64,000 bases of DNA from Oopsacas minuta (GCA_024704765.1 JAKMXF010000144.1:310001-374000); one strand, 5' to 3'; positions 4,764 to 50,826 are shown, counted from the stretch's first letter. Numbers and translations are program-made. Notes: generated from the letters alone by a model not told the origin.

Positions 4764-7700
4764 ATGACTTCCGTAAGACAAGCAGAAACGTTGAATGGTA
4801 TAGGATTACAAAATGATCAACTGTTCAGAAGTTTGCAAAAACAGCCTTCTGAACGGACCCGCAAGGATTACGATGCGATTGTTGATGCGCTTTTCCAATT
4901 TCCCGCTTTCCAGGGCTGTGAAGTTAAAATGTTATATTCAATTATACCTTGCGCACATTTTGAATTATTAGCGAAAGGTGACGAACTAGGAAAATCGGCT
5001 AAAAAACTAAAACGTAGAATCAGTTTTCAACGCAGTGATCCAAAAGTGAAAGATGGCTCTTTCCGTTCAAATTCGACACGACAGAAACACGAGAGCATTT
5101 GGTATATGTTAGTCTCTGGCAGTATTATCTATGAGTTGGAGAGACTTGAGAAAGGGAGTGTTTTCGAGGTGAGTAAGGAAGCCCTGAAAGGACACAATCA
5201 TCGCTGGGGTAAAAAGAAAGATATGCAGATACCTGTAGCGATAACTAATAGTTCTCTAGTCAGGTTTACTTACCTACCGGAAGAGGTAAAGGAGTCCGGT
5301 CACGCGTACCGATCGTCATTTACCGCCCACTTGGAAAGTATTGAATCTGTTAAGCAAGTCCCGATTGGTAAGAGACTATCAATCTCATATTCTCAAGATT
5401 GTATATACCCCAATTCCGCAGAGCAACGCAGCAGGAATTTGAGTAGTTTGGTTGATCCTAAGTCTCAGTTAACGAACAGCACAGAGAGTGAATTGATACC
5501 AAAAGACCCTCTAATAGTTTATACAGGTCCTAGTCCTCAGAAAAAAATGCTAAGCAACAATTCCGACGGTCTTTTAAGTCCCAGTTTAACGGAGGGTAGT
5601 ACGGGTCATAGTTTCCCATTCGGTGTATCACCCAGTCCGGCATGGCCTAGACACAGTCAGTGTTCAGTTGGCAGTGAATCTGCTCACTCCCAGAACTCTT
5701 CTACTGATTACTCTCTTGGGAGTAACGGTGATAAAGGAAAATCTGATCCTAAACCTCCGTCGATTACAAACGATATGTCATTATTCTCCATAGACAAATT
5801 CCTGCCAGACTTTATAACTGAGACTGTTAGTAAACTGCCACAAGACAGGACTGAAGAAGAGATTTCTAATATTTCAACTTGCCTCAAGAACGCTCCAGCA
5901 TTTACATCATTCTCTGACCCGGTTAGATGGCGGATTTGTTCTAAAATGAGATATAAATCTGTACCGAGTATTGGTATGGTTGTCCTGAAGCAGGGAGAGA
6001 CGGTAGACTGCTGGTATGTGATACTCAGTGGGAGTGTAGAGATGTTTATTGACGGTCAGTCACCTTTCAAGCTACAGATTGGCAGTTCATTCGGTCTAGG
6101 TCCAAAGCTCACCCCACTAACATGTAAGGGTAACATGATGACAGCTGAAGCTAACTGTATATTCGGTTATCTCCCTCTCGAACAACTCAAATCGATCTTG
6201 GAGGAGAACCAGCAGAAACGAGTCACACAATTTGAAGGGGATAAGCCTATATCAGTGCAGGAGCTGAGACAAGGATCTGGCGGGCAGTATGGTTACGTCA
6301 TTCTACAAGCTACCCCTGACATGCTACTCAGTCAGCTGGTGGAGACTAGCATAGATGAGAAGTACATTGAATACTTCCTCCTTACATATCGTGTATTTCT
6401 TCCACAACCTTCTGGCGTATCCTACAGGATAGAGCATTGGTTCTCTACACCCAACCATTCTATTAAAGCTGTACAGGTATTACTCATTTGGCTACGTAAT
6501 CACTATACTGACTTTGAGCACGATAACGAAATGCAGGATTTTCTAGACAAGTTTATACATATGTTGAAGGTGTCGGGTCGTGAGATGGCAGGATATGCTG
6601 ATAGTATTAGGGAGCTACGCGCAATAAAGTCATCCCTCAGATATGTGTCTATGTCCGCACTACACGAGCAGGTCTCTCCTATCGCTATAGGGGGTGGAGC
6701 TGAAATTGGATTTCCTATTCTAGTTACTAAAGTTACAAAGACTCGTCTCTTAAATATTGCATTGCTACAAGGTGATGAGTTGGTTTCTATAAATGGAAAT
6801 TCTTGTACAAACAAAACTTCAAATTGGGCGAGAAAGCTCCTCTTCTCAGGTATAGAATTGGAAGTTGGAGTTAAATATTCTAGAGACACTTTTGATAGGT
6901 TTATGAGTCTCCCGCGCGAATTCCATGTGACAGGATTCAACCCCGGGTACATAACACCTAACGCCATCAGTTCTCCTGACCTCTCCTCTCTCAACTGTGA
7001 ATCTGACTCACAACCCAATTCATCACACAAACGATCTCCAGGTGGTCTTCTAAGACGGAGTTTCAGGTTAAAACCTGCCAGTAGTAATGAAGATAAGTCG
7101 AAGAGTCTGGGTTCTAGCAGTCAGTTAGATAAGCAATACGATAGATTCTTAAAGAGGAGAGGGAGTCTCCCGAAGAACTTTGTTAGCAAATCTCGTAAGA
7201 ATTTCCTCGCTAGACCTGTGAGAAATGAGAGAGCAGCTACTGTCACCCCAGATTCCTCTGTATTCGGAGAAGAGGACTCTGCTTCTAGCTCAAACGAGCG
7301 TCACTCTGACCAGAACTCACGCTATCCATCGGGTACCTATACACTTCGCCCCACACGTGCTAATTCCGGTATAGCGCTCAAGAAACATATTCTTAAGCTA
7401 TACTATGTAGACCATTCATTCCGTTATATACTCATATCTCTACTAACCAGATCCTGTGACGTCATACAATTGGGTTTACAAGAGTATAACGCTGATTCTG
7501 CAACTTTTTACACCTCTCATGAACACCATCATCTCTGCCTAGCAACGGTCGATGCCAATGGAATTGTAAAGACATCTATTCTCCCACCAACTCTATCTAA
7601 TCTCCCATCAAAATACCTTCCCGGCTGTAGATTCTATGTTAAACCGAGTTTTATTGTAGGAAGTATTTGTCATGACGAAGTGGCTAAAGAAATGTTCCAG

Positions 7701-8741
7701 GAATCCCTCGATCTTGTAAAATTGACTAATTTAGACTCAGAAAGGTTGGCCAGGAGAGTTACACTACGAGATTCTACCATGTTTAGATCTATTCCATCTA
7801 CTGATTACATTTCTGACATTTTCAAATGCTACTCTCCTAACAACCGGAAGCAGCTACAGGAATTTATTGATCTATCAAATGCAGAGCGTTGGTGGGTGTG
7901 TACTGAGGTTGTGAATGAACGCAATATATCTGTACGTGCTAAGATAATCAAAATGTTTATAAAGCTAGCCAGCTCCTGTCGACAACTCAACAACTTCAAT
8001 GCAATGTTCTCTGTCATAAGCGGGCTAGATCATAATAGTGTAAGTAGACTCAAGACAACTTGGGATAGAGTGTCTGGAAAATACAAACGAATCCTGAACG
8101 ACCTCAAAGTCTACCTAAACCCCATGCGTAACATGGGAGAGTACAGGTCTCTCCTTAGGACCGTGTCCCAATCAGGCGTACCATGTATCCCAATGTTCCC
8201 TATTGTACAGAAAGACCTTACAGTTATTCATATGAGTAACAGTACACACATCGATGGAATGGTTAATTTTGATAAACTCAGATTGTTAAGTGAGAAAATA
8301 TACATACTGAGTGCTCTATGTCCTAAACCTTATCAAAGCTTGGAGCAAGACGTCACTAACACGACACATAACACGACAACTGATAAGCCCAAATACGTCG
8401 CAATAACATCTCCCATTAAGAGACAACGAAAGAGCAGTAGTTACTCAAACAATATGGAATACAGATTACGCTATGAAGATGAACTAATGAACGTTTGTAT
8501 AGAGTATTACATTGACACGATAAACAGTCGTATCATAGATGACGAGGTGCAGTTAGAAGTTCTCTCTCAACTTTGTGAATTCACTCTAACAGGCTCGCGT
8601 AGAACCAGCCAGCAGAAACGAACAACATCTTTATCTCGTATAAGTAGCTTCAGTGTCAAAGCAGGTTCCTCTACCCATCTTATTGTCCCTGAGAAGAAAC
8701 CTCTCTCAAGTACACGGTCTTTCGAATTCCTTTCCAAATAG
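4764..8741 (+). CDS. RAPGEF2: Rap guanine nucleotide exchange factor, PDZ-GEF type (cNMP-like, REM, PDZ, RA, RasGEF); single coding exon
   Basis: 1332-codon ORF, first ATG 4764. cNMP-like (QGETVDCWYVILSGSV), REM (YIEYFLLTYRVF), PDZ (IGGGAEIGFPI...GDELVSING), CDC25 domain (NNFNAMFSVISGL, PCIPMFPIVQKDL). RAPGEF2 versus RAPGEF6 not resolvable. Confidence 0.9.
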   Translation: MTSVRQAETLNGIGLQNDQLFRSLQKQPSERTRKDYDAIVDALFQFPAFQGCEVKMLYSIIPCAHFELLAKGDELGKSAKKLKRRISFQRSDPKVKDGSFRSNSTRQKHESIWYMLVSGSIIYELERLEKGSVFEVSKEALKGHNHRWGKKKDMQIPVAITNSSLVRFTYLPEEVKESGHAYRSSFTAHLESIESVKQVPIGKRLSISYSQDCIYPNSAEQRSRNLSSLVDPKSQLTNSTESELIPKDPLIVYTGPSPQKKMLSNNSDGLLSPSLTEGSTGHSFPFGVSPSPAWPRHSQCSVGSESAHSQNSSTDYSLGSNGDKGKSDPKPPSITNDMSLFSIDKFLPDFITETVSKLPQDRTEEEISNISTCLKNAPAFTSFSDPVRWRICSKMRYKSVPSIGMVVLKQGETVDCWYVILSGSVEMFIDGQSPFKLQIGSSFGLGPKLTPLTCKGNMMTAEANCIFGYLPLEQLKSILEENQQKRVTQFEGDKPISVQELRQGSGGQYGYVILQATPDMLLSQLVETSIDEKYIEYFLLTYRVFLPQPSGVSYRIEHWFSTPNHSIKAVQVLLIWLRNHYTDFEHDNEMQDFLDKFIHMLKVSGREMAGYADSIRELRAIKSSLRYVSMSALHEQVSPIAIGGGAEIGFPILVTKVTKTRLLNIALLQGDELVSINGNSCTNKTSNWARKLLFSGIELEVGVKYSRDTFDRFMSLPREFHVTGFNPGYITPNAISSPDLSSLNCESDSQPNSSHKRSPGGLLRRSFRLKPASSNEDKSKSLGSSSQLDKQYDRFLKRRGSLPKNFVSKSRKNFLARPVRNERAATVTPDSSVFGEEDSASSSNERHSDQNSRYPSGTYTLRPTRANSGIALKKHILKLYYVDHSFRYILISLLTRSCDVIQLGLQEYNADSATFYTSHEHHHLCLATVDANGIVKTSILPPTLSNLPSKYLPGCRFYVKPSFIVGSICHDEVAKEMFQESLDLVKLTNLDSERLARRVTLRDSTMFRSIPSTDYISDIFKCYSPNNRKQLQEFIDLSNAERWWVCTEVVNERNISVRAKIIKMFIKLASSCRQLNNFNAMFSVISGLDHNSVSRLKTTWDRVSGKYKRILNDLKVYLNPMRNMGEYRSLLRTVSQSGVPCIPMFPIVQKDLTVIHMSNSTHIDGMVNFDKLRLLSEKIYILSALCPKPYQSLEQDVTNTTHNTTTDKPKYVAITSPIKRQRKSSSYSNNMEYRLRYEDELMNVCIEYYIDTINSRIIDDEVQLEVLSQLCEFTLTGSRRTSQQKRTTSLSRISSFSVKAGSSTHLIVPEKKPLSSTRSFEFLSK

Positions 8742-10249
8742 ATCCAAATATTTAAGGGTCTATTTTTATCCTATTTTAACTTGGAAATACTTTGAGTTGC
8801 TATAATGTATATTTTGCTATGTATCTCTGCTATAAAATATTCCGTTTGTAATTAATTTTTCACCAACTATATATGTACGTATTTATTGGAATCTCATGTC
8901 CTAGCTATTTAACGGGACAGGAGGTTATATTTTGATGTAGAGTGTTGTGTTAGTCTCATATGCTGAATCGAGGATGATTAGACAACAAAACTAGCTACTG
9001 CTCACCAAATTTAGTTTCTGTGGACACTTATCTTTGCATTTTAATGTCTAAGCCAACACCTGTTGTCATATGAGAGCTTAGTTGCAGATTTATTTCCTTA
9101 CGGTTTATCAAATATTTCATCATAGCCATCGGCTACTAGACTAGACCGTAGGCAGGAAAATCTGGGTACTAACTATATGAAATATTATTATTCATTCTGA
9201 AATCGAATTGCATATTGGCTCTGCGTATGTTATTTTAAACTGTCTATTCATGCAAAGTTTGAACTCTCCATGTCGTGACTTGATGTCCATTTAATTACTT
9301 AACCTACATTTTATCCTAATTTCTAATAGATTAATCATATAACACCTTCTCGCTTGCCCTATTGATAAGCGTTTCTCAAAATGAAAGATTATTAGAGACT
9401 TTAAAAGGCAAATTATGTTAGATAATTACAAACATTGGAATCTGTTAAGGATGTAAGTAAGAGTGTAGCTGAGTATTCAACTTCAGTTTCATCAATTCCT
9501 AATCTTGAATTCGAACTATGAGACGGAAGGCTCCTCATTGTATGGGCATTATCTGCCTCTTTAACTTTGTGTGAGAAATGAAGAGCGATTCTAATAGTTT
9601 GTTTATTGAATTGAGAGAAGCACGTCGTAATCATAAGTTCTTTGGATAATTGTCCAGTTTATTCAAAGATATTTGTATGGACTGAAAATGTCTCATTTGT
9701 GGAATTGTTAGGAGTTCTCTTTCTACTTCAAAAGCTGTCCTGGAACTTTTTCCAAAGTTCTATTAAACTTTTCTTGTTAGTGAATATTGTTATTCTCATT
9801 CAAAGTTTAATTTTCGACAAGTTTTGGACTTCATTCTATTGATAAAGTGTTCAGAATTCCCTCAAGTTCGAAATAAGTTTGTGTAGACGAATAGCTATTA
9901 TAATAATATTGTGTGTTGTTTAATAGACCCTTTAATTATTCTTAAGCCATCAATCAACACATCTATGCCAAGTTGTTCATGTTATAACCTTTTCTAGACT
10001 GTATTATAGACCTATGGCGCTATGTTGTTACCACTTTATTTATATTCAAACTATACCTATTTACAAGAAAGCTTTTTGCTTACTTGTGTTGCGCGGTTCG
10101 CAAGCACTTCGTGTCTGATTCCATTGTATGCTGGCTATAAGAACAACTATTGCTACTCCCAAGGGGGTTCTTATAACCGGCATCCACTGTACATGTATGC
10201 CCTTCATGCTTCATGTTCCAGTTCTGATGCCATTAGCAACATACAACAG

Positions 10250-12282
10250 ATGATCTTACAAAGAGAAATCATACTTGATATACTCCTATTCATTATTTTC
10301 ATGTATGTTGGAAGAACTTATATTTCTGAGGTACGTAGGACTAATGAATTAAGAGAGGAAATGTCGAATGAGATTTTGCTGGGAGTAGATAGACAGGAAT
10401 ATGAGAGTAATGTCAGTAGGGAGGAGGAATTAGCCTTGAAAGTATGTAAAGAAGAGATTCAAAGGAAACGTGCTTACCTTGATAAATGCATTGATTACAA
10501 TGTAAAACAGGAACAATATAAGGAACAGATTGAACTCACTGAAGGAAGGAAGGAAGAAGGTAGTTAAGGATTTGATAATTATAGTCTCTTTATCTAAATT
10601 CCTATTTATAGGTTTACAAGAAATCTTAAAGATAGGACAGTTAGAGTTAGACGAATGCTTTAAGGACAGGTGAGTATAGAGTGTAGGTGGTATACTACAA
10701 CTGACTGTCTACGTAACCTTTCTATTCAACTCCTTTTTTCTTTATGTATATTTGTCCGAGTTGAATAAGAAACTGGCATAATAGCAACAAAATTGATTTT
10801 TCACATGTGTGTGGAATATTATCTTGTAAATTGATTTGTTCTGTCAAATATATGTTTTCCAATCGATTCTGACGCATAACTCTATGAATAATTGTTCTAG
10901 AGGGCACTTTCGGCGGACACGAAGTATCCACGGTTCGCATAGGGCAAGCAAGTGAAGCGTGTTTATTTCAATTATGATTTTTATAGAAATGGTTTGAAGG
11001 ACAAACATCCAGATTGTTTTCCGAAAGTTTCAAAGAGTCCTAATGAAAAGAATATATTCAGAAACAGTTCAGTGAATAAGATAAAATACTTCATACTGTT
11101 CTTAGGACATCCACGGTGTGGTAGCAGTATTATAAAGGCTGTATTAGACGCTCATCCACACGTGATTATAGCTACTGAATCAAATGCTGTACAAATATGG
11201 ACGAATCATGTAAAGAAACAAATTAAATTTGATAGATACGATTTGTTCAATATTCTCAGAAATAGATCTATATTTATAGCAGATAAAATTGGTAGAAATG
11301 TACCCGCAATAGAGAAGTACTATACACTACAGTTGCCGGGTCTGTATATGGGAGAGTACAAGGACTACATACACGTCATTGGAGACAAAGGTAGAGAATT
11401 ATACTAACTGTAAATCCTGGGATAAGTCCCGTAAGCTCATTCAGGGATTTTCTGTATTTTAAAAGATTTACAGTTTGTGTAGTGAATAGATAATTGGGTG
11501 ATATGTAGTTACATTTATTCATATATGAAGCAAACTGTAGCTATTAATAACTACCGTGTAATCTCCACAAACGAGTTACCATGGATGCAGAAAAATGCAA
11601 CCCCCGTTTCCCTGATTCTGCCAAAATCCACGTTTGTGTATGTTCATTTGTATGGGAATAGGAATTCGCTCAATTTATTTTCACTCCGTTTCCAGAGGCC
11701 TCGTTAGTGGAAGTTATACTGTAATTTTATTGCTTCCATTTTATATCTATAGAGGGACTTTTGATGAATATTGATAGAGGTTTTGATGATTCGGAGGAAT
11801 TTTTCCGATTGTTGGATAGATTCCAGAGTTTCGTCGGCTATCCTCTCAAATTTTTTTACATCGTCCGGAATCCCTACGATCTCATAGCAACCATGTACCT
11901 CTATTCTATTTCCGCAGAATTACGGCAAGAACTGTTTACGAATAATAGAACATTAAAGTCAACTCAAAGTCTAAGTAACATGGTTAGAAATCACGTAGCT
12001 TCTTTCAAGAAGCTACAAAGACACATAAACCACTACGGAGAAAGATTACTGACTCTATATAACGAAGATCTGATCTCAAATCCTAAACTGTTCATTAGAA
12101 GAATGTGTAATCACATGGGAATATACTGTAACGATTATTATATAGAAAAAACCTCTGCGAAAGCGTTCTCTAGCGTTACAAGGAGTAGATACAGTGTAGA
12201 ATGGAAACAAGACGCAAAGAACCTTGTAGATACTGCTATTAGGAATTATCCATTTCTAAACAGATATTCATTTGAAGATTGA
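10250..12282 (+). CDS. Type II membrane sulfotransferase (TPST/Sulfotransfer_3-like) with coiled-coil stem
   Basis: Exons 10250(or 10022)-10559, 10612-10669, 10987-11390, 11753-12282, all GT-AG and in phase. TM IILDILLFIIFMYVG; 5'-PSB loop GHPRCGSS; 3'-PB motif YIVRNPYDLIATM. Confidence 0.8.
11554..11721. mobile_element. MITE family B in sulfotransferase intron 3
   Basis: TA-flanked TIRs CCGTGTAATCTCCACAAACGAG / CTCGTTAGTGGAAGTTATACTG; internal TAGGAATTCGCTCAATTTAT-TTCACTCCGTTTCCA shared with 52063-52206. Confidence 0.75.
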
Positions 12283-12532: not shown

Positions 12533-15454
12533 ATGAGTCAGCTGTTCTCTCCCTACCATGCAATTGGCTTGTACAGTCAAGATATTCCATTCTCAGTCCT
12601 CTCCAGCGGAAATCAGCAATTACTCGCTACTGCCATAGACGAATCCTTTCATTTATATTCTCTAAGAGATCTACAGCTGATGTTTGTGGGATATGTTGAT
12701 GGTAAGAGTGAAGACTCTGAATCTAATTATATACAGAGTATGCTCTTCCATAACGGGAGACTGTACATAGCACAAGGTGATAATATCCGTGTGTGGAATA
12801 ACGGCCGTATTATGCAAAGCCACCGGACTGAATTCCCTGCTAGCTTGCTCTTGGGGTGTGGAAAGAGGATGTTATCTGTAGAAGAAGGATCTGTCAGAGT
12901 ATGGGAGTGTGAAAATGAGGATAGATTAGGTGAAGAATATCTCCAGATAGAATTTGATTCATCTATCTTCAAGATAACATCCATAGTCCATCCTACTACA
13001 TATGTTAACAAGGTTTGTCAATGATTTATTTTGCTACTAACAATTCTTATTATTAAATACGTAGGTGCTATTCGGGAGTCACCAGGGATCGTTACAATTA
13101 TGGAATATTTGTAAGAACATTCTAGTCTATGAGTTCAGAGGCTGGAGCTCTCCTGTCCTTGCTCTGGAGCAATCTCCATCTCTTGACGTCATAGCTATAG
13201 GACTGATGGATGGGACTATACACTTACATGACATAAAGTTTGACCAACCGGTGCTCCGCTTCTCACAGGATTCTCCAGTAACTTGTCTCAGTTTCAGACA
13301 GGACGGAGAGTCTGTACTCGTGTCAGGTAGCAAAGAAGGTCAGCTATCTGTGTGGGACCTGGAGAAGGAGAGATTGAAAGGAGTTGTGTGTGATGCTCAC
13401 CTAGGGTCAGTGATATCTCTATCATTCATTGGAGCACGAGAAGTAGCTGTATCCGCTAGCAACGATAACACCATAAAGGTATGTATGTATTTATATTGGT
13501 AGTGGTATTTTAGTATATTCTATAGATGTGGGTGTTTGATGAGCCTGATGGCCTCCCTCGTCTGTTGAGATCCAGATCCGGACACGCCGCTCCTCCCTCG
13601 CGTATCCGGTTCTTCTCCCCAGGGGGTCTTGCTCTCCTTTCTGCCTCACAGGACGGGACCTTCCGTCTCTTCTCATTGGTCAGATCCTCTTCAGTGGAGT
13701 TGTCACAGGGTCACACCCTCAGTCAGTCGCGTAAGAAAGGTGTGAGTATTGAGAGTCTGAGACTTCCTGCTATTACAGAATTCTCAGTAGAGATGTCACG
13801 AGCTGATGACTGGGACTGTATAGCTAGTGTACATTCCAATCTACCATGGATACAGACTTGGCATTTATTCAGGAAATCTGTTGGACAACATAGAATCAAA
13901 TCACCACATAATCCTCAAATAATACCTACATGTGTATGCTCTAGTCCGTGTGGGAATTACATAGTCGTTGGAGATAGCTCTGGACATGTAGAGCTGTTTA
14001 ATATACAATCTGGACAACATAGAGGTTGTTACGCGAGAGAAGAAGGAGTAGGAGCTCATAACGGTGACGTCAGAGGGGTGGCAATCAATTCCACCTGTAG
14101 TGTACTGTTCTCCCTGGGTACAGATGGGGTACTAAGATTCTGGAATCTGACAAGACACGAATTGGTCTGGCAGCTCCCTTTTAAGATGACAGCATCCCGG
14201 CTAATATTACACAGGTATATATACGTCTTCATAACAATTTGTATTACAGAATTATTTGTATTTCTTCTGTAGAGATTCTGGCCTCATTGCAATAGTTTTA
14301 GATGATTTCTCTATCCAGATAGTAGATGCAGATAATCATAAAGTAGTTAGGACATTCCATACGACCAGTCAAACAACAGACCTTGTATTCTCTCCAGATG
14401 CTCGCTGGCTAATCGTCAGTCTATTCGACTCAACAATTCGTGTCTGGGACATTCCTACTGGTAGAATGATCGACTGTTTTAGAGTGGGATCCCTTGTTAC
14501 GTCCCTAGCTATATCTCCTACAGGAGAGGCACTAGCAACTGCCCATGCAGATAGTCCTGGAGTGTATCTCTGGAGCAATAGGACTCTGTATGGAAGAGTT
14601 TCTCTCAAGGCGATAGATGAACTAGCGCCTATTCCTGCTATCCAGCTGCCTAGGAGCATTCCTGAGGAGGGAAGTGGTTGCCTGGTTGAAGAAGGAGTGA
14701 CTAGTGAGAATAGATTAGATGGAATGGAAGAAATGGATTATGGAGAGTACTGTAGTCCCAATATATTAGGTAAGCTAATCAACTGTTATTAGTCGAACGT
14801 GTTTATTGTACTATTGACTGCTAATTGTATTTAGATGCAGAACTACTTAGCTTAGCTGGTCTCTCCCGTTCCCACTGGTATTCTCTATCGAAGTTAGATA
14901 TTATAAAGGAACGAAATAAACCCACAGACCCTCTAGCTAAGCCTAAGCTCGCTCCTTTCTTCCTACCCACTCAAGCTGATACTAAATCATTCAGTTTCTT
15001 AACATCAGAAAATGGAGATAGTAGTGAAACGAAATCAAGAGTTATGACACGACATACTCAAGAGAAGAGTACCTTCCTTACTCTACTAACATCCTGTAAT
15101 AAATCAGGGGACTATTCTAACTATATAAATCTTATTAAAGAGATGGGCCCAGCTGCTATCGACGTTGAAATCCGTCTACTAGGACCAGACATAGGAGGTA
15201 GCGTTGAAGAATTGGATACATTTCTAGATTTCCTACTCAAATCTCTGGAAATGAAAACTAACTACGAGCTAGTTCAGGCACTTATGGATGTATTTCTCCG
15301 TGTACATAGTTCTGAGTTGATGAAACACGGAGATATCCTTGGTTCAAAGACAGAGCGATTATGTGATTTACAGGAGAATAGTTGGTCAGAGGCTGCTAAC
15401 CTGATGAGGTTCAGTTTGTGTTTGATCGAGCTTTTTAAAAAGCCGACTCTTTGA
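12533..15454 (+). CDS. WDR36: WD repeat protein 36 / Utp21 (SSU processome)
   Basis: Exons 12533-13012, 13065-13478, 13526-14214, 14273-14769, 14835-15454; introns 52, 47, 58, 65 nt. N-term SQLFSPYHAIG, HPTTYVNK, C-terminal Utp21 domain (IKERNKP...APFFLPT). Confidence 0.93.
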
Positions 15455-35914: not shown

Positions 35915-36099
35915 TATTATTTCTTCTCTCATAATCACTTTATGCTCAACTCCTATCTACATGATTTCTGTAACTATTAATAACTGTAATAGATTATTTT
36001 GTTGTTTATGTATCATATTTTGTTTCCATATTATTATTCAATTATATATTAATAGTGTGTATTCTGAAGTTACTGATTCATATTTAAGTTCTTGTTAGA

Positions 36100-36585: not shown

Positions 36586-36671
36586 TTGTATTTGTAACAA
36601 ATAAATGCAAGTAAATTGTTATTTTTGTCAAAAATATAATTCCAATATTAGCACATTCCAGTTTGGTTGCT

Positions 36672-38484: not shown

Positions 38485-38528
38485 TAATCAAATAAAATGA
38501 GATAAATATTGATTTGAAATAATCTCAA

Positions 38529-40296: not shown

Positions 40297-43200
40297 ATGT
40301 CAGATGTATTGCCAATGGACCCGCCCCTCTCCGAGACCAATAATAACACGTCACCACATCAACCAATTCACAACTCTGCTAACAACACAAGTCCGAACAG
40401 AAGCGAGATATCACAAGTGTACTCAGAACCAGGGATAGCAGATAAGCATGATATTATTGCTAATCAGTTGGCATTTTCTAAGAATAATACAACACTCTCT
40501 AAGCATGAAACTTTGACAATTCCATTCCTTCCTGATTCAATTGATGATTCCATAGAAACAGAAACGGGTTCATGGAATGGTGCAAACCCTCCTGTAGCTA
40601 AGTTAGAATCCAGAGGCTCTGGTGTCATCTGTGATCACTGTTACTGTCCCTCCTCTCCGAATACTCTCAGTCCTACACTCAAGAAACAGAGACAGGCGCG
40701 GCAGCAGGACAACACGGCCCTGAGTGCTGCCATCCCTCCATTCCGACTTGCATACGCTCCAGCAGTCCCTACATCTTTCGTCATGTTACAAAGACTCCTA
40801 CAACTGAACCCCTCAAGACCTAGTCCGCTCCATTCCCCCAGGAGCATGTTCTCATCCGACAGAGCTCATCTCTCCCGGATTGCCCCCCGTCCTTTCCAGA
40901 GGACTCTCTTCCCTCAACGCCCCATCCTCAAACCTACCTTCTATTCTCAAACAAGAGATCCTATCCTCTCTCCTATCAGACTACATAACCGTGGAGTAAA
41001 GAGGAGAGGTAAGGGAGGTAGACATCTCATACTCAATAAGAAATCTCTGAAAAGGAAACTCGCAGATAGCTCTGGTGTATCTACAGACACAGATGAGGAT
41101 GCTAATCATCTCTTGTGTCGCCGATCTGACAGGAATATCGGTAAGAGTCAAAAGTACCGCTACGAAGTAGACCTAAACCTCAGTGATTCAGAGGACGACA
41201 GGCCCTCTAAAAAGACAAAAGAGAACATAATCTTCCGTCCCTCTGAAGTATTCGACCGTAAACCTACTCTAATGACAAACACGAGTGAGTTATTCGAACA
41301 GTGGCCGAGTGAGGAGGAATACGTTATTGATAAAGTACTTGGAACTCGTGTCATAGATGGAGATGATACAAATACAGATGCTGAACAGTTCTATGTTAAA
41401 TTCAAAGGATACTCTTATCTACATGCCAAATGGTCTACTCTATCCCTACTCAACCAGGTAGACAAGAGAGCTGTACAGAAGATTAACAGATACAGACAGA
41501 AGCAGCAGTCAGAGTTCGGTTTGCTAGACGAAGAGCCTTTTAACCCAGACTACATCCAGGTAGATCGTATCTTAGACGTGGAGAGAGTAAAGGATACACA
41601 CGGCACTGTATCTATATATTATCTGGTTAAATGGTGTTCTTTATCATACGATGAGGTTACTTGGGAGTTAAAAGATAATATACTAGACGAGGATAAAGTG
41701 AGACTATACGAGAAGATTAATACTCCTCCTCCTATCTCCTCTCTTGTACACAAGCCACGGCCTTCAACAGAGGTTCCTGTTACAAACTCTGATAAAGAGT
41801 ATAAAAATAAAAATTATCTGAGACAGTATCAGCAAGTTGGGCTGAATTGGCTCGTTATGAAATGGTTTTCAAGAAAGAATTGTATTCTAGCAGATGAAAT
41901 GGGTCTAGGGAAGACAATACAAACAATCACATTCCTCAAAACAGTCCTTGACTACGGGATTAGGGGACCATTTCTAATAATAGCCCCTCTCTCTACAATC
42001 CAAAATTGGTACAGAGAGTTTCAGAGTTGGACCTCTATGAATGTTATTGTATATCATGGGACTTCTATGAGTAGGAAAATAATCGAAGAGTTTGAATTTT
42101 ATTTCAAATCAATTGGCGATAAGAGAGGATATTTCAAATTTAATGCTGTTATCACTACGTACGAGGCTGTAATGGTTGAGGGAGGTGAATTGATTAATAT
42201 TCCATGGAGGGTTACTGTCATAGACGAGGGACATAGGTTGAAAAACACGCGGGGGAAATTAACTTCACACTTGAAGGCTTTTGACATGGAGCACAAACTG
42301 CTGCTGACTGGTACACCTCTTCAGAACTCTGTGGAAGAGCTGTGGTCCCTCTTAAACTTCCTGGATCCGATTAAGTTCGATTCGGATCAGGAATTCCTGG
42401 CGAAATTCGGTCAACTCCAATCAGAGGACCAGGTGGTCGATTTACAGCGGGTACTAAAACCAATGATGCTCCGTAGATTGAAAGAGGACGTTGAGAAGAA
42501 CTTAGCTCCTAAAGAAGAGACCATTATAGAAGTTGAATTAACATCTATTCAGAAGAAATATTACAGAGCAATTATGGAGAGGAATTTCTCTTTTATAGTT
42601 GCCAAGGCAACCTCAAGGAATGTACCTAATTTAATGAATTTGTTTATGGAACTACGCAAGTGCTGTAACCATCCCTTCCTAATCAAAGGAGCTGAGACTC
42701 ATATAACTGAGGACTGGCAGAAGTTCCATCCGCATGATCCCGCGTGGCGGTCACTAGTCCAGGCTTCTGGGAAACTTGTCCTCGTGGATAAACTCCTCCC
42801 GAAGTTAAGAGAGGGAGACCACAAGGTGTTGATATTTTCACAAATGGTAAAGTGTCTAGACCTCCTAGAGGACTATCTCATCTGGATGAGGTACCCATAC
42901 GAGAGGATCGATGGACAGATCCGCGGGAATTTGAGACAAGCAGCGATAGACCGATTCTCAAAACCTGGTTCAGATCGGTTCGTGTTTCTCCTCTGTACAC
43001 GAGCTGGAGGTCTGGGTATAAATCTCACTGCAGCTGATACAGTTATAATATACGATTCAGACTGGAACCCTCAGAACGACCTACAGGCTCAAGCTAGATG
43101 TCACAGAATAGGACAAGATAAAGCCGTTAAGGTATACAGACTACTAACACGTAACTCCTATGAAAGACAGATGTTTGACAAAGCTAGCATGAAACTTGGA

Positions 43201-45588
43201 CTAGACAAGGCTGTACTACAGTCCGTTAATAATGGATTAAAGGATAACACTGGACAACTGAGCAAGGGTGAAGTAGAGGATCTGTTGAGACGTGGAGCGT
43301 ACGGGGCTATATTTGATGATGATGATAATGCAGCTAAGTTTTGTAACGAAGACATAGAGGTTATCCTAGAGAGGAGGACACAGGTTGTTACTATAGATAC
43401 TGTAGGGAATAATACATCAACATTTGCTAAAGCTAGCTTCAATTCTGGAGAAGATTCTGAGATATCTATGGATGACCCAGAGTTTTGGAAAAAATGGGCC
43501 CTCAAAGCTGAAGTTGATCTAGCTAAATTGGAGAAGAAGAACGGATTAATACTCAGTGAGCCGAGAGAGAGACGACAAACAAAGAGATTTGAAATCAATG
43601 ACCCTTCATTTGACGTAGCGGCTATAGAACCGGATTCTAACACCTCCACAGGGGAGGAGGAGGAAATAGAAGTCCCCCTGTCTGACACACAGTGTCTCCT
43701 ATTTAGGGGTGTGTGTATGAAAATAGAGACTGCATTGATGACGTATGGCTGGGGAAGATGGAGCATGATGTTACGTAACTCTGATCTAAAATGTACATTC
43801 AAGTCCCGTGACCTAGAGCATATCTGCAGACAGATATTAGTATTCAGTCTGCATTATTTCAAAGGAGATGATAAAGTCAAATCCACGATTAATTCTCTGT
43901 TAGACCCAGAACAGCCTGGAGAAGAGGCTACTGAGTACGGGAAGGAAGAATTTGAACAAATGCTCTCACAACCCGTGGATTCTCTCTTTACTGATTCAGC
44001 CTATAAGAGACATCTACAGCGGGTGAGTGGACGAGTGTTACAGCGTGTTCGTGTACTTCACCACATCAGAGAATATATTATAGCTGAGAACTACGATAAG
44101 TTAATGAATGGTGAGCTAACCGTAGAACAGTTCGATGCTGATCTCCCTGATATAGAGAATCCCCCTGCTACTTGGTGGAGCCCATTAGCTGATAAATCAC
44201 TAATATTGGGTACAATAAAACACGGTTATGAGAACTATCACCTCATGGCTGAGGACCCAGCTCTGCAGATTGGACCTCCCGCAAACTTCTCTCCAGAAAA
44301 TGAGCCCTCTACTATCCCCAAGAAATGCTCTGTCAGTGACCTAGACGATAGTCTAATGGATCTGTCTGATACAGAGGACAAACGTCCGTTGAAGGATTGG
44401 CCGTCTGCCTCCGAGCTGAATAACCGTCTAAAGAAGATGGTAACAGAATCAGATCGTAATCTTAAGAAGATAATCCTCCGTTCTGCGAGAAAAGCTCTCA
44501 AAGCTAAGAAACAGAAAATCCATCAGAATGCAAAGAGAAGACGGTCATATGAAGACGGACACTCCAGTAATCACCCCTCTACCTGGAGCAGGCGAGAGGA
44601 ACATGACTTCGCTAAAGCCCTCTACTCACACGGGGTAGAATGGGACACAGATTCAGAGAGTCATGACTGGAGTAAAATAAAACTCGTCGCTAAACTAAGG
44701 AAGGATATAAATCAGATAGAATCTTTCTATACTGAATATATTTGTATGTGTTATTCTGTATTGAATAAGGAGCATAACTCCATCACTAGTGGAGTAACAA
44801 TTGTTAAACAGGAAAGAGCTCAGAAATTTATTAAGCGATTACATCTCCTGTCACTTGTGAGAGAGGTTCTAACTATTCCTGATATCCAGGAGAGGTTACA
44901 GCTGTCCGAGGGGTCAGGAGAGGTTCCTGTCTGGTGGAAGATACCTTCTCATGACCTAGACCTCATGCGGGGGGTAGCTAAACACGGATTAACTCGCAGT
45001 GACCTCAAGATATACCTGGACCCAGATTTATCATTCTCACAAACAGTACCGACCAATCAACACGCAGCTATTTCCGGCAAGAAGTTAGTACAGAGTCTCC
45101 CAACTAACTGGCCAAGTTATAAATCTATTTTCCGGCGTTTAACAAAACTCGTGCATCTCCTGAAAAACTCATTCTGGTCTAAATCCCTCCCTCCTCTCCC
45201 TGTTCTAGAAAACGATCTTTCCGTGTATGGACCCCACGCATATGAACAACAACACAAACAGGAAGTAGACGACATTCCTCTAGAATTAATTGTCAGAATC
45301 CCTCTAGAAAGAGGAGAACAAATTGACAGTTCTGACAGTGACACTTCAAGTTCCAGTGGTAGCTGTAACTCCAGTCAGACAGACCTGTCATCAGACAACT
45401 CCGATTCCTCAGATTCTGAACCCTCTCTCTCTGACGTTATGAGTCCAGGGTGTATGTCTCCCTGTCAAAGAATTGACCAATCAGAAGAGATGCTCGTTTC
45501 GATTCCACTCACGAATTGTGGGAAAATTCTAGCTAACACCACACATTCCAGTGCGGTATTAGCGTTGTCAGGCTTGGTTCATAACTGA
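40297..45588 (+). CDS. CHD7: Chromodomain helicase DNA-binding protein, CHD6-9 (kismet) subfamily; single exon
   Basis: Two chromodomains (FYVKFKGYSYLHAKW; YLVKWCSLSYDEVTWE), SNF2 ATPase (ILADEMGLGKT, DEGHRLKN, SDWNPQNDLQAQARCHRIGQ), MDDPEFWKKWA. Specific paralogue not resolvable. Confidence 0.9.
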   Translation: MSDVLPMDPPLSETNNNTSPHQPIHNSANNTSPNRSEISQVYSEPGIADKHDIIANQLAFSKNNTTLSKHETLTIPFLPDSIDDSIETETGSWNGANPPVAKLESRGSGVICDHCYCPSSPNTLSPTLKKQRQARQQDNTALSAAIPPFRLAYAPAVPTSFVMLQRLLQLNPSRPSPLHSPRSMFSSDRAHLSRIAPRPFQRTLFPQRPILKPTFYSQTRDPILSPIRLHNRGVKRRGKGGRHLILNKKSLKRKLADSSGVSTDTDEDANHLLCRRSDRNIGKSQKYRYEVDLNLSDSEDDRPSKKTKENIIFRPSEVFDRKPTLMTNTSELFEQWPSEEEYVIDKVLGTRVIDGDDTNTDAEQFYVKFKGYSYLHAKWSTLSLLNQVDKRAVQKINRYRQKQQSEFGLLDEEPFNPDYIQVDRILDVERVKDTHGTVSIYYLVKWCSLSYDEVTWELKDNILDEDKVRLYEKINTPPPISSLVHKPRPSTEVPVTNSDKEYKNKNYLRQYQQVGLNWLVMKWFSRKNCILADEMGLGKTIQTITFLKTVLDYGIRGPFLIIAPLSTIQNWYREFQSWTSMNVIVYHGTSMSRKIIEEFEFYFKSIGDKRGYFKFNAVITTYEAVMVEGGELINIPWRVTVIDEGHRLKNTRGKLTSHLKAFDMEHKLLLTGTPLQNSVEELWSLLNFLDPIKFDSDQEFLAKFGQLQSEDQVVDLQRVLKPMMLRRLKEDVEKNLAPKEETIIEVELTSIQKKYYRAIMERNFSFIVAKATSRNVPNLMNLFMELRKCCNHPFLIKGAETHITEDWQKFHPHDPAWRSLVQASGKLVLVDKLLPKLREGDHKVLIFSQMVKCLDLLEDYLIWMRYPYERIDGQIRGNLRQAAIDRFSKPGSDRFVFLLCTRAGGLGINLTAADTVIIYDSDWNPQNDLQAQARCHRIGQDKAVKVYRLLTRNSYERQMFDKASMKLGLDKAVLQSVNNGLKDNTGQLSKGEVEDLLRRGAYGAIFDDDDNAAKFCNEDIEVILERRTQVVTIDTVGNNTSTFAKASFNSGEDSEISMDDPEFWKKWALKAEVDLAKLEKKNGLILSEPRERRQTKRFEINDPSFDVAAIEPDSNTSTGEEEEIEVPLSDTQCLLFRGVCMKIETALMTYGWGRWSMMLRNSDLKCTFKSRDLEHICRQILVFSLHYFKGDDKVKSTINSLLDPEQPGEEATEYGKEEFEQMLSQPVDSLFTDSAYKRHLQRVSGRVLQRVRVLHHIREYIIAENYDKLMNGELTVEQFDADLPDIENPPATWWSPLADKSLILGTIKHGYENYHLMAEDPALQIGPPANFSPENEPSTIPKKCSVSDLDDSLMDLSDTEDKRPLKDWPSASELNNRLKKMVTESDRNLKKIILRSARKALKAKKQKIHQNAKRRRSYEDGHSSNHPSTWSRREEHDFAKALYSHGVEWDTDSESHDWSKIKLVAKLRKDINQIESFYTEYICMCYSVLNKEHNSITSGVTIVKQERAQKFIKRLHLLSLVREVLTIPDIQERLQLSEGSGEVPVWWKIPSHDLDLMRGVAKHGLTRSDLKIYLDPDLSFSQTVPTNQHAAISGKKLVQSLPTNWPSYKSIFRRLTKLVHLLKNSFWSKSLPPLPVLENDLSVYGPHAYEQQHKQEVDDIPLELIVRIPLERGEQIDSSDSDTSSSSGSCNSSQTDLSSDNSDSSDSEPSLSDVMSPGCMSPCQRIDQSEEMLVSIPLTNCGKILANTTHSSAVLALSGLVHN

Positions 45589-45847: not shown

Positions 45848-47673
45848 ATGACCGGAATATGTTTATGGCCAACAAGTGTATTATACGCATTCCATTTACT
45901 CATTGCTATCACTAGGTTAGTTTGCTATATATTAAGCTGATTCTTATTGGTTAGATAAGAGAAAAACAAGACCCACCAAAAGACCCTAAACCTTCACATT
46001 TACACATTTCTGAGTTAAAGGAATATCACCGATTTCAAAAGAGACAACAATCCAATACAACCAATATTAATCTCACTGAACAGCCTGTAGTTATACCTAC
46101 AGACACGAGAGATAGAACTCATACAGCACATTTAGAGGTACCAAATTTTGTGTGATTAACCACTAAGTTATCTCATTTCATTGTGCCATACAATTACCAT
46201 AAATATCTATGCACCATTAAAGGCTTCTGTAAACATCTCTATAAATATTAATATATGTAGTTTATGGGTTGTTAAACACTTCGTTTGGTGAGATTCTAAT
46301 ATTTTTGAGTTAGGTAATACAAGAGAATAATAGCATGGAAGTGCCTAATCAACTGGCGATAGATAATCTGGTAGATCAGCTAGTGACGTCAGATGAGGAG
46401 CAGAGAATAGCTGGAGATATTAAGCTACAAGTTGGAATGATGTTCCAGTCACTGAGAAGTAAGTATATCAGCTGATTTTAATTGTTCTTTTATTTATTTT
46501 GTAACAGGATTGGATCAGGAGAATGCTGCTCTGAGACGAGCAGGAGGAGGAGGAGGTGGGAGTAGAGGACTAGGTCCTGATGCTATGGGGGACATAGCAA
46601 CTCTACAAGAAGAGATAGCTAACTACCAGGGACAAGTAAAGAGCCTTGAAGATAAGAACAACGAGGTATTACATCAATAATAACATATTCTATCTATTTA
46701 ATAGTACTACTCCTTTTAGCTGTATAAAGTAAACCATGAATGGTCAGAAGAGTATAAGAACATGAGGAAGTCTCTGACTGATCAGATCAAGAAACTGGAG
46801 GAAGAGAGAGATGCTCTAGAGAGACAGATAGCTAAGCTGGATGCTGAGCTGAATGAGGATGATACTGCTAGTAATCTGTTGATTAAGAAACTCAAGCACA
46901 CTAATGGATTACTTGCACAGGAAAAACTGGTGTGTATAAGATACATACAGTCAACTTCCGTTATCAAACACGGATATATCGTAATACCCGCTTATATCGA
47001 AGCCTGAAATTGTACAAATCCCAAACCGTCAAAGTATCACATAATTCATCGGGTATATCCAAGTAATTATCGCGGTCCCTTGAGCATGGATAAAACAGGA
47101 ATTGAATGTATTTATAAACATTTCAGGGTAATTGAATTACATCAGTCGATGTATTTAGAGGATATAATTGTATTTAGCTAGCAGAACAGAGGAGTGAAGA
47201 TCTAGAATCAGAGAGGACTAAACTAGCTAAACGTCTGAATACTCTTGAGAAACTATACGAGGAAGATGTGAATGAGGAGCTAGCTGCTAAGGAACAGATA
47301 CGGGACTTGGCTATTACTGTCAGAGAGATGAAGGACAAAGAAAAGAAGCACATTAACGAGTATAGAGTACTAGATGATAGAGTTACTGACCTACAAGAAC
47401 AGGTAGATATAATAATAACAAACATTTAAATAAATACATATTCTCTCCTATTTATAGTTGAGGAAGTCTAAGAATCAAACCAAAGCCGAGAAAGATCAAC
47501 GAGAAAAAGCTGAAAAAGAATTGAAGAAGGCAAACAGAGCTTTCAAAGAAATCAAAAAGGTCTACACGCCCTCACGTCTTAGAGAATTCCCCCCTCCTCC
47601 TTTTGATTCCTACTGTCCCATTGACCCGTATGACATATATGACCCATACGAGCGCGTATATAAGTACAAATAG
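45848..47673 (+). CDS. TNIP/ABIN-like coiled-coil protein
   Basis: Exons (45848-45915 tentative), 45955/45960-46137, 46314-46458, 46508-46665, 46720-46929, 47178-47402, 47458-47673, in phase. VKSLEDKNNELYKVNHEWSEEYKNM aligns with TNIP1 VKMLEQQRSELLEVNKQWDQHFRSM. Confidence 0.65.
46948..47108. mobile_element. MITE family A in intron of TNIP-like gene
   Basis: TA-CAGTCAACTTCCGTTATC ... TAATTATCGCGGTCCCTTGAGC ... GGAATTGAATG-TA. Confidence 0.82.
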
Positions 47674-48026
47674 CTACATACCAGATACCAAAATGGTTGT
47701 TAAGTACTCCCTATTTCTTGTGTATAATAACAGTTTTACTGAGCTCTTTGATATATGTTATGTATTCTGTATTTGTAATTAATAATTATATCAATCAACT
47801 GTCTTAATGTTTGACATCTTGAAATGATATACATGGGATTTTGAGATAAATTCGAGCACATTTTGAGGCTTAAACCATCAATCGCGGGCGTCCGATTCTC
47901 CCCAAAGTTACGATACTTTGATTCAAATTTTATACAAGTACCCCTCTGTAAATAATGACGTCAACCAGTATCTGAACTGCCTTGAATTCTATCCTGAAAT
48001 ACGTAGTATTAAAGGGAAGCACTAAC

Positions 48027-48423
48027 ATGGTAAAATTACACTAGTCTAACTTGGATAAAATCTTTTATTTGAATCCACAGTTTTATAGTTCATGTTGTTG
48101 ATATTTATCCTTGTCTTTTAGGAGATTTTTGAGCAGCTGAGCAAGGAGCACTACTCACCCCCTATCAGCTCAAAGGACAGGAAGAAAGTACCCAAATACC
48201 CTCCTAGATATGGGTTCGGGCCTTCTGAACTAGCCGCGGAGAAGAAACTTAGTAAACGACTAGCTAGTCTCGCACCTTGGGACGAGGTAAGAAATTTAAA
48301 ATCTAAAATTTACATGTCTTTATAGTTGAATAATACTGGTAGGACTTTTCAGTTTTAGAGGACTGTATCCCTAGCAAGGAGGGATACACTTATTCAGAGA
48401 CGAGTGAGGATGAATTCTATTAG
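48027..48423 (+). CDS. Small spliced ORF (~82 aa), or alternative 3' exons of the upstream TNIP-like gene
   Basis: ATG|GTAAAA at 48027-48029; exon 48122-48286 (55 open codons, TTTTAG acceptor, GAG|GTAAG donor); exon 48343-48423 ending SETSEDEFY*. Confidence 0.5.
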
Positions 48424-48663: not shown

Positions 48664-49937
48664 ATGGCTGATTGGCAGAGAATACAGTCACGTAAAATGT
48701 TACAAGACCACGACAGAAGAGACCCCCTCACAGGTGAGAAGAACCACAGGGAACATCTCTTAAGACTACAACAGGATATAGATCATGCTATCACAGATTC
48801 TTTGATCTCTGCTCCGACAGACGATGATATGGATATTCTCAGGCATCTTACACGTCAAAACAAACGAGTAAGTTATGAAAAAAACCTTTTATTTATTATA
48901 ATGTGTTAGAATTGGCATGGGTATCCACTGGTGAAAAGGTTGGAAACAGCTGATTTAACTATTCTGTCTAATAGCTGAGAGAGCATGGATTGACTCTAAG
49001 AGAACAAGTTCACAGGAAGGAACAGATCTACAGACTGAGGATAGCAGACAAGAGACACGAGACCAGAGCATTTGAGGAGATGATTGATGATCTAGAGAAG
49101 TCTAACGAGAGATTGAAGGATTACTACGAGCTGTATAAAGGTACAGGTATGCATCTAGATATTGATGGCATCAGGAAACAGAGAGAAAATGAACCAGCTA
49201 ACATCCCTCACTACCGAAAGAATGTGTATGATAAATATAAACAGGCTTATCCATCCATTAGACCAGAGATTAGTAAGAAAACGCTGGCAGAGATGGTGCA
49301 ACTGAAGACAAGTTTGAGGGACAAGGCGAGCAGAGGGGAACTCCTCTTGGGAGGGGGGGACGAGACAAAGAAAATGAGAGATCAGATGCAGAGACTGAAA
49401 ATGGAGAAAGAGAAAATGTTGAAAGGTATTTCAGCTCTTACAGGAAGGAGAGGAACAGATATTAGCTTACCTAAAGGAGCTACTGATATCTCTAAAGATA
49501 AACTGAAGGAAATAGCTATGATGAAATTACTAGCTCAGAAGAAAGGTAGGAAAATGGATCTTGACCTGTCAAGCAGTGACAGTGACAGTAACGTGTTTGA
49601 GAGCAGTAGTGAGACTGATGATGATGAAGATATAGCTGAAAAATGGAAGAGAATGAAAGAGGAAAAATACAAGAAACTCAGAAAAATGTCAGATGCAGTT
49701 GAGAGCTTACACGGCGACTCTCCTAAGGAATACAGAGATAGACGTAAAAGACGACAGAACATAGAGATTAGTAAGAAGCAAAGAAATGCAGGAGCAGCAG
49801 CTGGACAAGTTGAAGAGATCACTCAGAGACTGAAAGAGTTGGAAGAGAGATCTGCTAAAGTTTTCGCACAGAAATCAAAAATAGATTCTTTGATAGAACA
49901 GCACAAACAGGAAGCAGAAGATATTTCTGATGATTAG
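48664..49937 (+). CDS. Uncharacterised charged coiled-coil protein
   Basis: Exons 48664-48867 and 48975-49937 (CGA|GTAAGT ... TAATAG|CTG); K/E/R-rich heptads and an acidic Ser tract SSSDSDSNVFESSSETDDDED. Confidence 0.75.
48911..48952 (+). mobile_element. MITE family D right-end fragment in intron
   Basis: GGGTATCCACTGGTGAAAAGGTTGGAAACAGCTG matches the right end of 50024-50110. Confidence 0.55.
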
Positions 49938-50110: not shown

Positions 50111-50181
50111 GTATAGAACATTTCGTGGAGTTACTAGTATAATTTCTCGTTACAAATAATACTACATAAATTTTGCTAGCC

Positions 50182-50826
50182 ATGAATATTCGTAATTGCA
50201 CTATTGACGATATGATAAACATGCAGAACTGCAATCAACTGTGTCTGCCCGAGAACTACCAGCTAAAGTACTACCTGTACCATGGATTATCCTGGCCACA
50301 ACTCTCCTACGTAGCTGAGGACGAGAGCGGTAAGATAATCGGCTACGTCCTGGGTAAAATGGAGGAGGAATCAGAGGACGTGCCACACGGACACATTACT
50401 TCACTAGCTACACGTCGTACTTACAGACGTTTAGGTTTAGCTAGGAAGCTCATGGACCAAACATCACAAGCTATGATAGATAATTTCGGAGCTGAATTCT
50501 GCTCACTACATGTGAGAGTTAGTAACAGGGCTGCTCTGCAGCTCTACGCAAGGAATCTCGGATTTACACAAACAGGGATAGAACCTAAATACTATGCAGA
50601 TGGGGAGGATGCTTACGCCATGAGGAAGGATTTTAAAGGATGGAAACGAAGATCTGATAAGGATATTATAGTCCCTAAAGTCGGTGAGATTGCTATTACC
50701 AAACAGGTGGAGCAGTTATCGATAGATGGAACTTGTGGGGGACCAGATGACGTCATTAAGGGAGCTGAAGGTGTGAAAAATGTAGTGGATAATAATAGGA
50801 AATTAGAAAATAGTAAAAATGAATGA
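50182..50826 (+). CDS. NAA10: N-alpha-acetyltransferase 10 (NatA catalytic subunit); single exon
   Basis: MNIRNC...[62 protein letters not shown]. Confidence 0.97.

Follow-up and report, generated by a model that had tools for sequence, protein, structure and literature searches.

Background

Nematodes, tunicates, flatworms and a handful of further groups have operons whose transcripts are resolved by spliced-leader (SL) trans-splicing. Those of Caenorhabditis elegans are resolved with the SL2 leader, have an intercistronic distance of about 100 nt and usually contain two to eight genes. In the tunicates Ciona and Oikopleura dioica a single leader is used, and the gaps between genes are mostly a few tens of bases or nil. 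The polycistronic units of kinetoplastids extend over tens of kb, from a divergent to a convergent strand switch, and their genes are strictly co-oriented and unrelated to one another. A layout that resembles this last kind is present in the glass sponge Oopsacas minuta, in a stretch of 64,000 nt (contig C144:310001-374000; hereafter the window, with coordinates counted from its first letter). Over 46 kb, about 17 genes, from RAPGEF (4764) to NAA10 (50826), follow one another on the plus strand, with no supportable gene on the minus strand. An earlier reading of the window (the original prediction) had proposed that this run is a long polycistronic unit, or several.

SL trans-splicing has been described in hexactinellids (Douris et al. 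2010, as cited in PMC7986045), the animal class to which O. minuta belongs, and would explain the acceptor-like sites found upstream of start codons in the run. The hexactinellid reports describe the leader, not gene order. The leader of Aphrocallistes vastus is about 37 nt long and occurs on 4% of long cDNA reads (Francis et al. 2023, PMC10282587). A survey published in 2021 states that operons had not been reported in hexactinellids (PMC7986045), and the paper on the O. minuta genome is silent on operons and on trans-splicing (PMC10280926). Neither of the two glass-sponge genome papers mentions the strong same-strand bias described below, or that strand and gene order have been kept in six glass-sponge assemblies.

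The reading that we prefer, with a probability of about 0.55, is that the run consists mostly of independent units, with two exceptions in which one transcript would hold several genes: a tight cluster around FSAF1, and a cyclase gene nested within another gene. Most genes of the run would probably be separate units, each with a compact promoter of its own in a spacer of 244-1285 bp, and the known glass-sponge leader would probably be joined to their mRNAs at an acceptor that precedes the start codon by a few bases. The laminin, FSAF1 and LRP2BP genes, perhaps together with the small open reading frame (ORF) that follows them, would probably be copied into one primary transcript; the cyclase and its host gene would probably be held together in another.

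Gene calls were checked by Pfam and then by translated comparison with related assemblies, the protein searches for multi-exon genes being made exon by exon. The relatives are assemblies from ENA, taken as other hexactinellids from sequence identity and shared gene order. The sequences themselves show which genes are present, on which strands and with what spacers, as well as their conservation, the inversion and the promoter-like modules described below; what is said of transcription is what we infer.

Orientation and spacing of the genes

Twelve plus-strand genes are supported by Pfam: RAPGEF, sulfotransferase, WDR36, cyclase, ELOVL, LSM, laminin, FSAF1, LRP2BP, MFS, CHD6-9 and NAA10. The frames that belong to no family, namely a gene with transmembrane (TM) and coiled-coil segments, the Ser/Pro-rich host gene of the cyclase, two coiled-coil genes and the small ORF at 37897-38169, are conserved as plus-strand coding sequence in the relatives. 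The co-orientation from RAPGEF to NAA10 that had been claimed at the outset is thus confirmed by Pfam and by conservation, with a count of about 17 genes as against 16 confident and two tentative ones. Two pairs of genes listed separately in the original prediction merge, the ORF at 10022-10567 with the sulfotransferase and that at 17305-17970 with the Pro-rich exons.

At its left the run is bounded by a divergent junction with an ENGase-like gene, and at its right by a convergent junction with PGP, both of these neighbours being on the minus strand; co-orientation is unbroken between the two strand switches. Minus-strand genes at 9.4-9.9 and 16.6-17.2 kb had been named as what could break it. 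The minus-strand ORFs found there (9413-9634 and 16723-16929), and a further one at 29935-30159, have no Pfam match and no conservation in the related assemblies.

Some 17 consecutive genes without a supportable gene on the other strand, beginning at a divergent junction and ending at a convergent one, are what speaks for the most far-reaching alternative. According to this model, transcription would begin near the divergent ENGase/RAPGEF spacer and yield one very long polycistronic precursor, or a few of them, covering all or most of the 46 kb, to be cut into mRNAs by polyadenylation and SL trans-splicing as happens in kinetoplastids. We consider it improbable, and the spacing of the genes is one of the points against it. 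In order, the 16 spacers measure 1280, 250, 320, 1086, 1285 (from the host exon to the cyclase), 449, 326, 405, 185, 86, 174, 359, 361, about 870 or less, about 340 and 244 bp. Their median is about 350 bp, and 13 of the 16 are at least 244 bp long. The spacers of 86, 185, 244 and 250 bp that had been quoted as examples of many short ones are exact, but "many" overstated the case, since only three fall below 200 bp.

How much room a promoter needs can be judged from the 264 kb formed by the window and the 200 kb to its right. Four divergent gene pairs in this sequence have 264-307 bp between their start codons, so that about 150 bp is enough for a promoter and a 5' untranslated region (UTR). 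Convergent pairs have 49-350 bp between their stops, so that 25-125 bp is enough for a 3' UTR. By the local standard of the divergent pairs, only the spacer of 86 bp is clearly below what an independent unit needs, and those of 185 and 174 bp are borderline. At the other 13 junctions (244-1285 bp), the gap is not too short for a 3' end and a promoter, as it would have to be in an operon. The three tightest spacers adjoin one another, in the order laminin-FSAF1-LRP2BP-small ORF.

No promoter motif common to the short divergent spacers was seen by eye. The divergent spacer between PGP and NPEPPS (51972-52235) is only 264 bp long and has a TTAG acceptor-like site 4-7 nt before each of its two start codons.

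The laminin-FSAF1-LRP2BP cluster

Co-transcription is the simpler reading for this cluster, with or without the small ORF, and for no other place in the run. Once the 3' end of each upstream gene is accommodated, its spacers (185, 86 and 174 bp) can hardly fit a promoter as well, if at all, and for this reason laminin-FSAF1-LRP2BP, perhaps with the small ORF, may be a small operon resolved by 3' end formation and trans-splicing; we put the odds of this at about even.

The FSAF1-LRP2BP junction is the tightest. The AATAAA of FSAF1 lies about 50 nt before the LRP2BP acceptor, which stands 10 nt before the ATG and is conserved in all six species. In the relatives this spacer measures 84, 93, 100, 161 and 1581 bp, that is, 84-161 bp in four of the five. 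The laminin-FSAF1 spacer is 152-220 bp long in the four relatives with a secure FSAF1 start; in a further one (L028) it is 64 bp as called, and about 157 bp with the FSAF1 start as mapped. It contains an AGTGTGT element, conserved 45-70 nt before the FSAF1 acceptor, which we take to resemble the GU-rich element found downstream of poly(A) sites. The small ORF follows LRP2BP after 174 bp and is preceded by a conserved TTAG (at about -17, in six species) and by the conserved block ATGGGCAAC. The 185-bp and 86-bp spacers hold conserved 3'-end-like elements and acceptors and no recognisable promoter motif, a missing motif being weak evidence.

A different model does entirely without polycistronic transcription: all genes, also FSAF1 and LRP2BP, would be transcribed from promoters of their own, and trans-splicing would only trim 5' ends. 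In the tight pairs, the promoters would then lie inside the last exon or the 3' UTR of the upstream gene. This is doubtful in our view, though far from negligible. The FSAF1-LRP2BP spacer tolerates an insert of 1.58 kb in one relative and a palindromic insert of 75 bp in another, as this model would allow. Against it, the 86-bp spacer in O. minuta also has to accommodate the AATAAA of FSAF1, at +15, which leaves about 50 nt to the acceptor.

The palindromic insert (about 75 bp, in L027:10520-10680) resembles a miniature transposon. All contigs that were found for the relatives are genomic. L004, the one contig that spans both FSAF1 and LRP2BP, was considered as a possible transcript and rejected, because an intron is retained in it, showing that it is genomic DNA.

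The nested cyclase gene and promoter-like modules

One intron of the Ser/Pro-rich gene, 7.4 kb long, contains the gene for soluble adenylyl cyclase on the same strand. The donor of the host gene, CAG/GTCAGT at 17937/17938 (at the end of the ORF 17305-17970), is conserved in the sister-species locus L030, and the next host exon (25363-25471) is conserved, with an acceptor and a donor at 25354-25477. Because the nesting is on the same strand, the host transcript must run through the whole cyclase gene. This counts against the model in which every gene is transcribed on its own, since the host gene would in any case be transcribed through a complete gene. Nested genes are common in A. vastus, where 2,432 were counted (PMC10282587), and the O. 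minuta cyclase is like them in lying inside an intron of another gene; being on the same strand, it would be held by the host transcript in sense orientation.

The nested cyclase gene nevertheless seems to have a promoter of its own. Upstream of it, 196 of 344 alignment columns are identical between the window and L030, and the conserved part includes CCAAT, inverted CCAAT and TATA-like motifs. A second conserved, TATA-like module, made of three blocks in a five-species alignment, precedes the laminin gene (both modules are detailed in Table 1). The conservation of these non-coding blocks, in a comparison where the proteins are 50-83% identical, suggests that they are functional promoters inside the run. 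Conserved CCAAT and TATA-like modules in such positions weigh against transcription of the whole 46 kb from one end.

Two further motifs were seen near WDR36. A perfect TGACGTCA palindrome (a CRE/ATF-type site) lies at 12524-12531, 1 nt before the start codon, and TTTGACGT is found about 60 nt upstream of the gene in the sister species.

Splice acceptors and 3' end signals

A YAG trinucleotide occurs within about 30 nt of nearly every start codon in the run, often at a position that is conserved in the relatives. It is 1 nt before the ATG in FSAF1, 1-2 nt before it in NAA10 and at -31 in the cyclase, and RAPGEF has an acceptor-like TTTTTAG 4 nt before its ATG. The MFS gene, in contrast to nearly all the others, has no acceptor-like site near its ATG in O. 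minuta. These sites would fit long precursors cut into monocistronic mRNAs, and they count in favour of a polycistronic domain covering the run, while the MFS gene counts against it. So does the low frequency of the leader in A. vastus cDNA reads, which argues against obligatory trans-splicing (PMC10282587). However, the acceptor is not a mark of a downstream cistron, because PGP, NPEPPS and RAPGEF, which are first genes at divergent promoters, carry one as well. Their presence before first genes is in keeping with transcription of each gene from its own promoter.

An AATAAA or ATTAAA is found within 250 nt of the stop codon in only three of 16 genes (FSAF1, LRP2BP and CHD), and 3' end signals in this sponge thus seem to be mostly non-canonical. 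With so few stops followed by one, canonical poly(A) signals are no guide to where the 3' ends lie here.

Neither Rfam nor a tRNA scan gave a match in the window. An SL RNA gene linked to 5S rRNA genes was also looked for: the five 5S genes compared share only the 5S gene itself, with nothing linked to it. These five genes (on contigs C11, C321, C345 and C365) are dispersed, not tandem, and some pairs share duplicated flanks of 0.5-1.5 kb.

Gene order in other glass sponges

The series ELOVL-LSM-laminin-FSAF1-LRP2BP-small ORF-MFS-CHD is found in the same order and on the same strand in five relatives, and homologues of FSAF1 and NAA10 (63-88% identity) occur together on long contigs of several ENA assemblies. 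One relative was followed from the cyclase through NAA10 to PGP on the minus strand, then to NPEPPS with its nested genes Pam17 and FERM; all of these are arranged as in the window. The conservation of gene order is therefore not specific to the run, since the part outside it (PGP, and NPEPPS with the genes nested in it) has been kept too. That the conserved order covers the whole neighbourhood, and not the tight pairs only, is a point in favour of independent promoters for all genes. Extensive microsynteny has been reported for glass sponges (PMC10282587), and the match between the window and its relatives is in line with it.

The left part of the run has been less stable. Several independent assemblies of the sister species have the order RAPGEF (+), MRPS6 (+), sulfotransferase (-), WDR36 (+), and the inverted sulfotransferase is called by Pfam on the minus strand in at least three separate assemblies. 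The gene occupies L030:5637-7124 on the minus strand, as against 10022-12282 on the plus strand of the window, its catalytic exons matching L030:6696-5637. MRPS6 follows RAPGEF in the sister species (L030:4809-5126), and its O. minuta counterpart is located on contig C255. A gene inside the run therefore works in either orientation. It also follows from the inversion that WDR36 must have its own promoter in the sister species, in the divergent spacer of 418 bp. The inversion of one gene and the gain or loss of another, with the neighbours kept, are difficult to reconcile with a polycistronic precursor spanning the run. Kinetoplastid-type units lack internal promoters and their genes are not autonomous; the 46-kb run has promoter-like modules inside it, a gene that is inverted in a sister species, and a position where MRPS6, located elsewhere in O. 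minuta, stands in that species.

Strand bias in the window and its surroundings

The run had originally been assigned a chance of (1/2)^15, as if each orientation were decided by a coin flip. This is the wrong null: neighbouring genes share a strand more often than not in this region, and further long runs lie in the adjacent 200 kb. The statistics were obtained on the 264 kb mentioned above, a single stretch adjoining a window that was selected for its run. Coding frames were called with a codon model trained on the confirmed genes, and the rule for merging exons into genes was varied. With the rule that reproduces the manual count of 17, about 115 genes fall into 33 strand blocks, which corresponds to a probability that two neighbours are on the same strand, p(same strand), of about 0.72; other merging rules give 0.64-0.78. 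The longest same-strand runs comprise 17, 15, 11 and 9 genes, and three strand blocks (46, 39 and 28 kb) far exceed the others.

Among simulated 264-kb stretches at the fitted p, 12-14% contain a run this long, and for the 16,413 genes of O. minuta (PMC10280926) some 5-24 such runs are expected genome-wide. The length of the run is thus unremarkable, because a p(same strand) of about 0.7 predicts it, and this counts against a special long transcription unit at this place. The run is typical of the O. minuta genome, one case of a general tendency of neighbouring genes to share a strand.

It is very improbable, on the other hand, that the run is a chance arrangement, devoid of biological meaning, in a genome where gene orientation is random throughout. 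At p = 0.5 and with 16,413 genes, about 0.25 runs of at least 16 genes would be expected, so that one such run would be unremarkable after all windows had been scanned. But there are three more long runs in the adjacent 200 kb. Under every merging rule, the longest run is too long (P <= 0.0085 at p = 0.5 for a run at least as long as that observed) and the strand blocks are too few (P <= 0.0064). Moreover, the orientation of the genes from the cyclase to NAA10 has been kept in other glass sponges.

If all genes had their own promoters, co-orientation would be a product of neutral history, or of selection to avoid head-on interference where genes are densely packed. To our knowledge, genomes that lack operons seldom reach a p(same strand) of about 0.7, and we count this against such a model.

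Comparison with known systems and weighing of the models

The run shares with C. elegans operons the co-orientation of functionally unrelated genes. The likeness is closest at FSAF1-LRP2BP, where a poly(A) signal, about 50 nt and an acceptor just before the next start codon follow one another, a layout that is seen here in DNA alone. The run differs in that operon-grade spacing is found at only one to three of its 16 junctions, and in having 17 genes as against two to eight. We know of no specialised second leader in sponges. With tunicate operons it has in common that the genome is compact, the introns are tiny, there is only one kind of leader and acceptors directly adjoin the start codons, and it differs from them in the length of the gaps, the shortest being 86 bp and the median about 350 bp. 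The resemblance to kinetoplastid units lies in tens of kb of co-oriented, unrelated genes between a divergent and a convergent switch; unlike these units, the run contains spliceosomal introns, conserved promoter-like modules and a gene whose orientation is reversed in a sister species, and most cDNA reads of a related sponge lack the leader (PMC10282587).

The proposal of a polycistronic domain thus survives in part. A single long unit is unsupported, given the roomy spacers, the conserved modules, the inversion, the displacement of MRPS6 and an MFS gene that lacks an acceptor. The alternative wording of the original prediction, several units, holds up for laminin-FSAF1-LRP2BP-small ORF and for the nested cyclase.

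Several observations weigh against a run of mostly independent units with these two exceptions. The estimate of p(same strand) comes from a crude ORF caller applied to one 264-kb stretch beside the window, and the published genome-average gene density would give only about 0.54. The 1.58-kb insert between FSAF1 and LRP2BP in one relative (L029:10481-12061) is non-coding, and tight spacing of this pair is therefore not obligatory. A strict acceptor test, which asks for a pyrimidine tract and a YAG within 25 nt, is passed by only seven of 16 start codons as against 23% of all ATGs, a marginal difference (P = 0.055). The promoter-like modules were inferred from conservation and motif resemblance only, and the regions upstream of ELOVL and LSM are poorly conserved and uninformative either way.

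A broader claim is that glass sponges have true SL-resolved operons, with laminin-FSAF1-LRP2BP (perhaps with the small ORF) as an instance in six hexactinellid species, and that the same-strand excess (p about 0.7) is the footprint of widespread co-transcription. We hold this claim tentatively, at less than even odds. If this is true, Porifera, one of the animal lineages that branched off earliest, would have its first operons. Should even the small cluster be co-transcribed, an early-branching phylum would join the groups that have operons, with consequences for the question of whether trans-splicing opens a route to operons in any genome that becomes compact. Since the run is typical of its genome, the news from this window alone is modest.

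Gene models and minor features

The window has a base composition of about 39% G+C, very long open frames and tiny introns. Its features are collected in Table 1.

Table 1. Genes, spacers and conserved modules in and beside the co-oriented run of the O. minuta window
Feature	Position	Strand	Evidence and remarks
ENGase-like gene	608-3604	-	Divergent neighbour at the left of the run
RAPGEF	4764..8741	+	First gene of the run; Pfam cNMP-binding and RasGEF; 77% identity to L030:103-4092
Sulfotransferase	10022..12282	+	Pfam Sulfotransfer_1/3; catalytic exons 10952-11407 and 11761-12282; probable anchor exon 10022-10567
WDR36/UTP21	12533..15454	+	About five exons with tiny introns; Pfam; exons 70-87% identical to L030
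Small TM/coiled-coil protein gene	15775..16275	+	52% identity to L030:10577-11044
Ser/Pro-rich host gene	17362..28097	+	Putative gene model with exons 17362-17937, 25363-25471, then Pro-rich exons
Promoter-like module before cyclase	19010..19230	+	Conserved; CCAAT at 19017, ATTGG at 19053, TATAAGG block, TATAAATTGCAG at 19215
Soluble adenylyl cyclase (ADCY10-like)	19256..24721	+	Single exon; Pfam Guanylate_cyc and AAA_16; 80-83% identity in L030 and L026
ELOVL fatty-acid elongase	28547..29332	+	Pfam ELO (6.6e-68); in five relative loci
LSM-domain gene	29659..29934	+	Pfam LSM (2.4e-21); 90-97% identity in relatives; absent from the list of the original prediction
TATA-like module before laminin	30186..30255	+	Conserved; blocks TTTCATTTTCA, CCACACAACCTAC and GATATAAAC (the last at 30247); five-species alignment
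Laminin chain gene	30340..35914	+	Multi-exon; Pfam laminin EGF and Laminin_B; signal-peptide-like first exon; exons conserved in relatives
Laminin-FSAF1 spacer	35915..36099	+	185 bp; conserved AATCACTTT and AGTGTGT; acceptor TGTTAG at 36093-36098
FSAF1 (40S processome assembly factor)	36100..36585	+	Single exon; Pfam; homologues 63-81% identical
FSAF1-LRP2BP spacer	36586..36671	+	86 bp; AATAAA at 36600-36605; acceptor TTCCAG at 36656-36661
LRP2BP-like Sel1-repeat gene	36672..37722	+	Three exons; Pfam Sel1; exons 69-84% identical in six loci
Small conserved ORF	37897..38169	+	90 aa, N-terminus MGN; 44-47% identity in all relative species; no Pfam family
MFS transporter	38529..39935	+	Pfam
CHD6-9-type chromatin remodeller	40297..45588	+	Single exon; Pfam; 72-81% identity in relatives
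Coiled-coil gene 1	46456..48322	+	About five small exons, 5' end uncertain; exons conserved in L025, L002 and L028
Coiled-coil gene 2	48664..49937	+	Two exons; 67-68% identity to L025
NAA10 N-acetyltransferase	50182..50826	+	Last gene of the run; Pfam; top matches 75-88% identical, on the same long contigs as the FSAF1 homologues
PGP	51081-51971	-	Convergent with NAA10 at 254 bp

The ORF at 10022-10567, which encodes a TM segment and a coiled coil, had no match by BLAST; judging from the layout in the sister species, it is probably the exon for the membrane anchor of the sulfotransferase. Two spacers (at about 16330-16400 and 50020-50090) share, with weak similarity, an element about 60 nt long that can be written GC..CGG.TC.CAACT...GGACCC.TTGGTG.TCC. 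It may be a dispersed repeat, although BLAST found no further copy in the 264 kb. The LSM-domain gene is, by our own reading, SmF-like. Lastly, the small ORF between LRP2BP and the MFS gene may be an unannotated small gene, and its product is possibly N-myristoylated.

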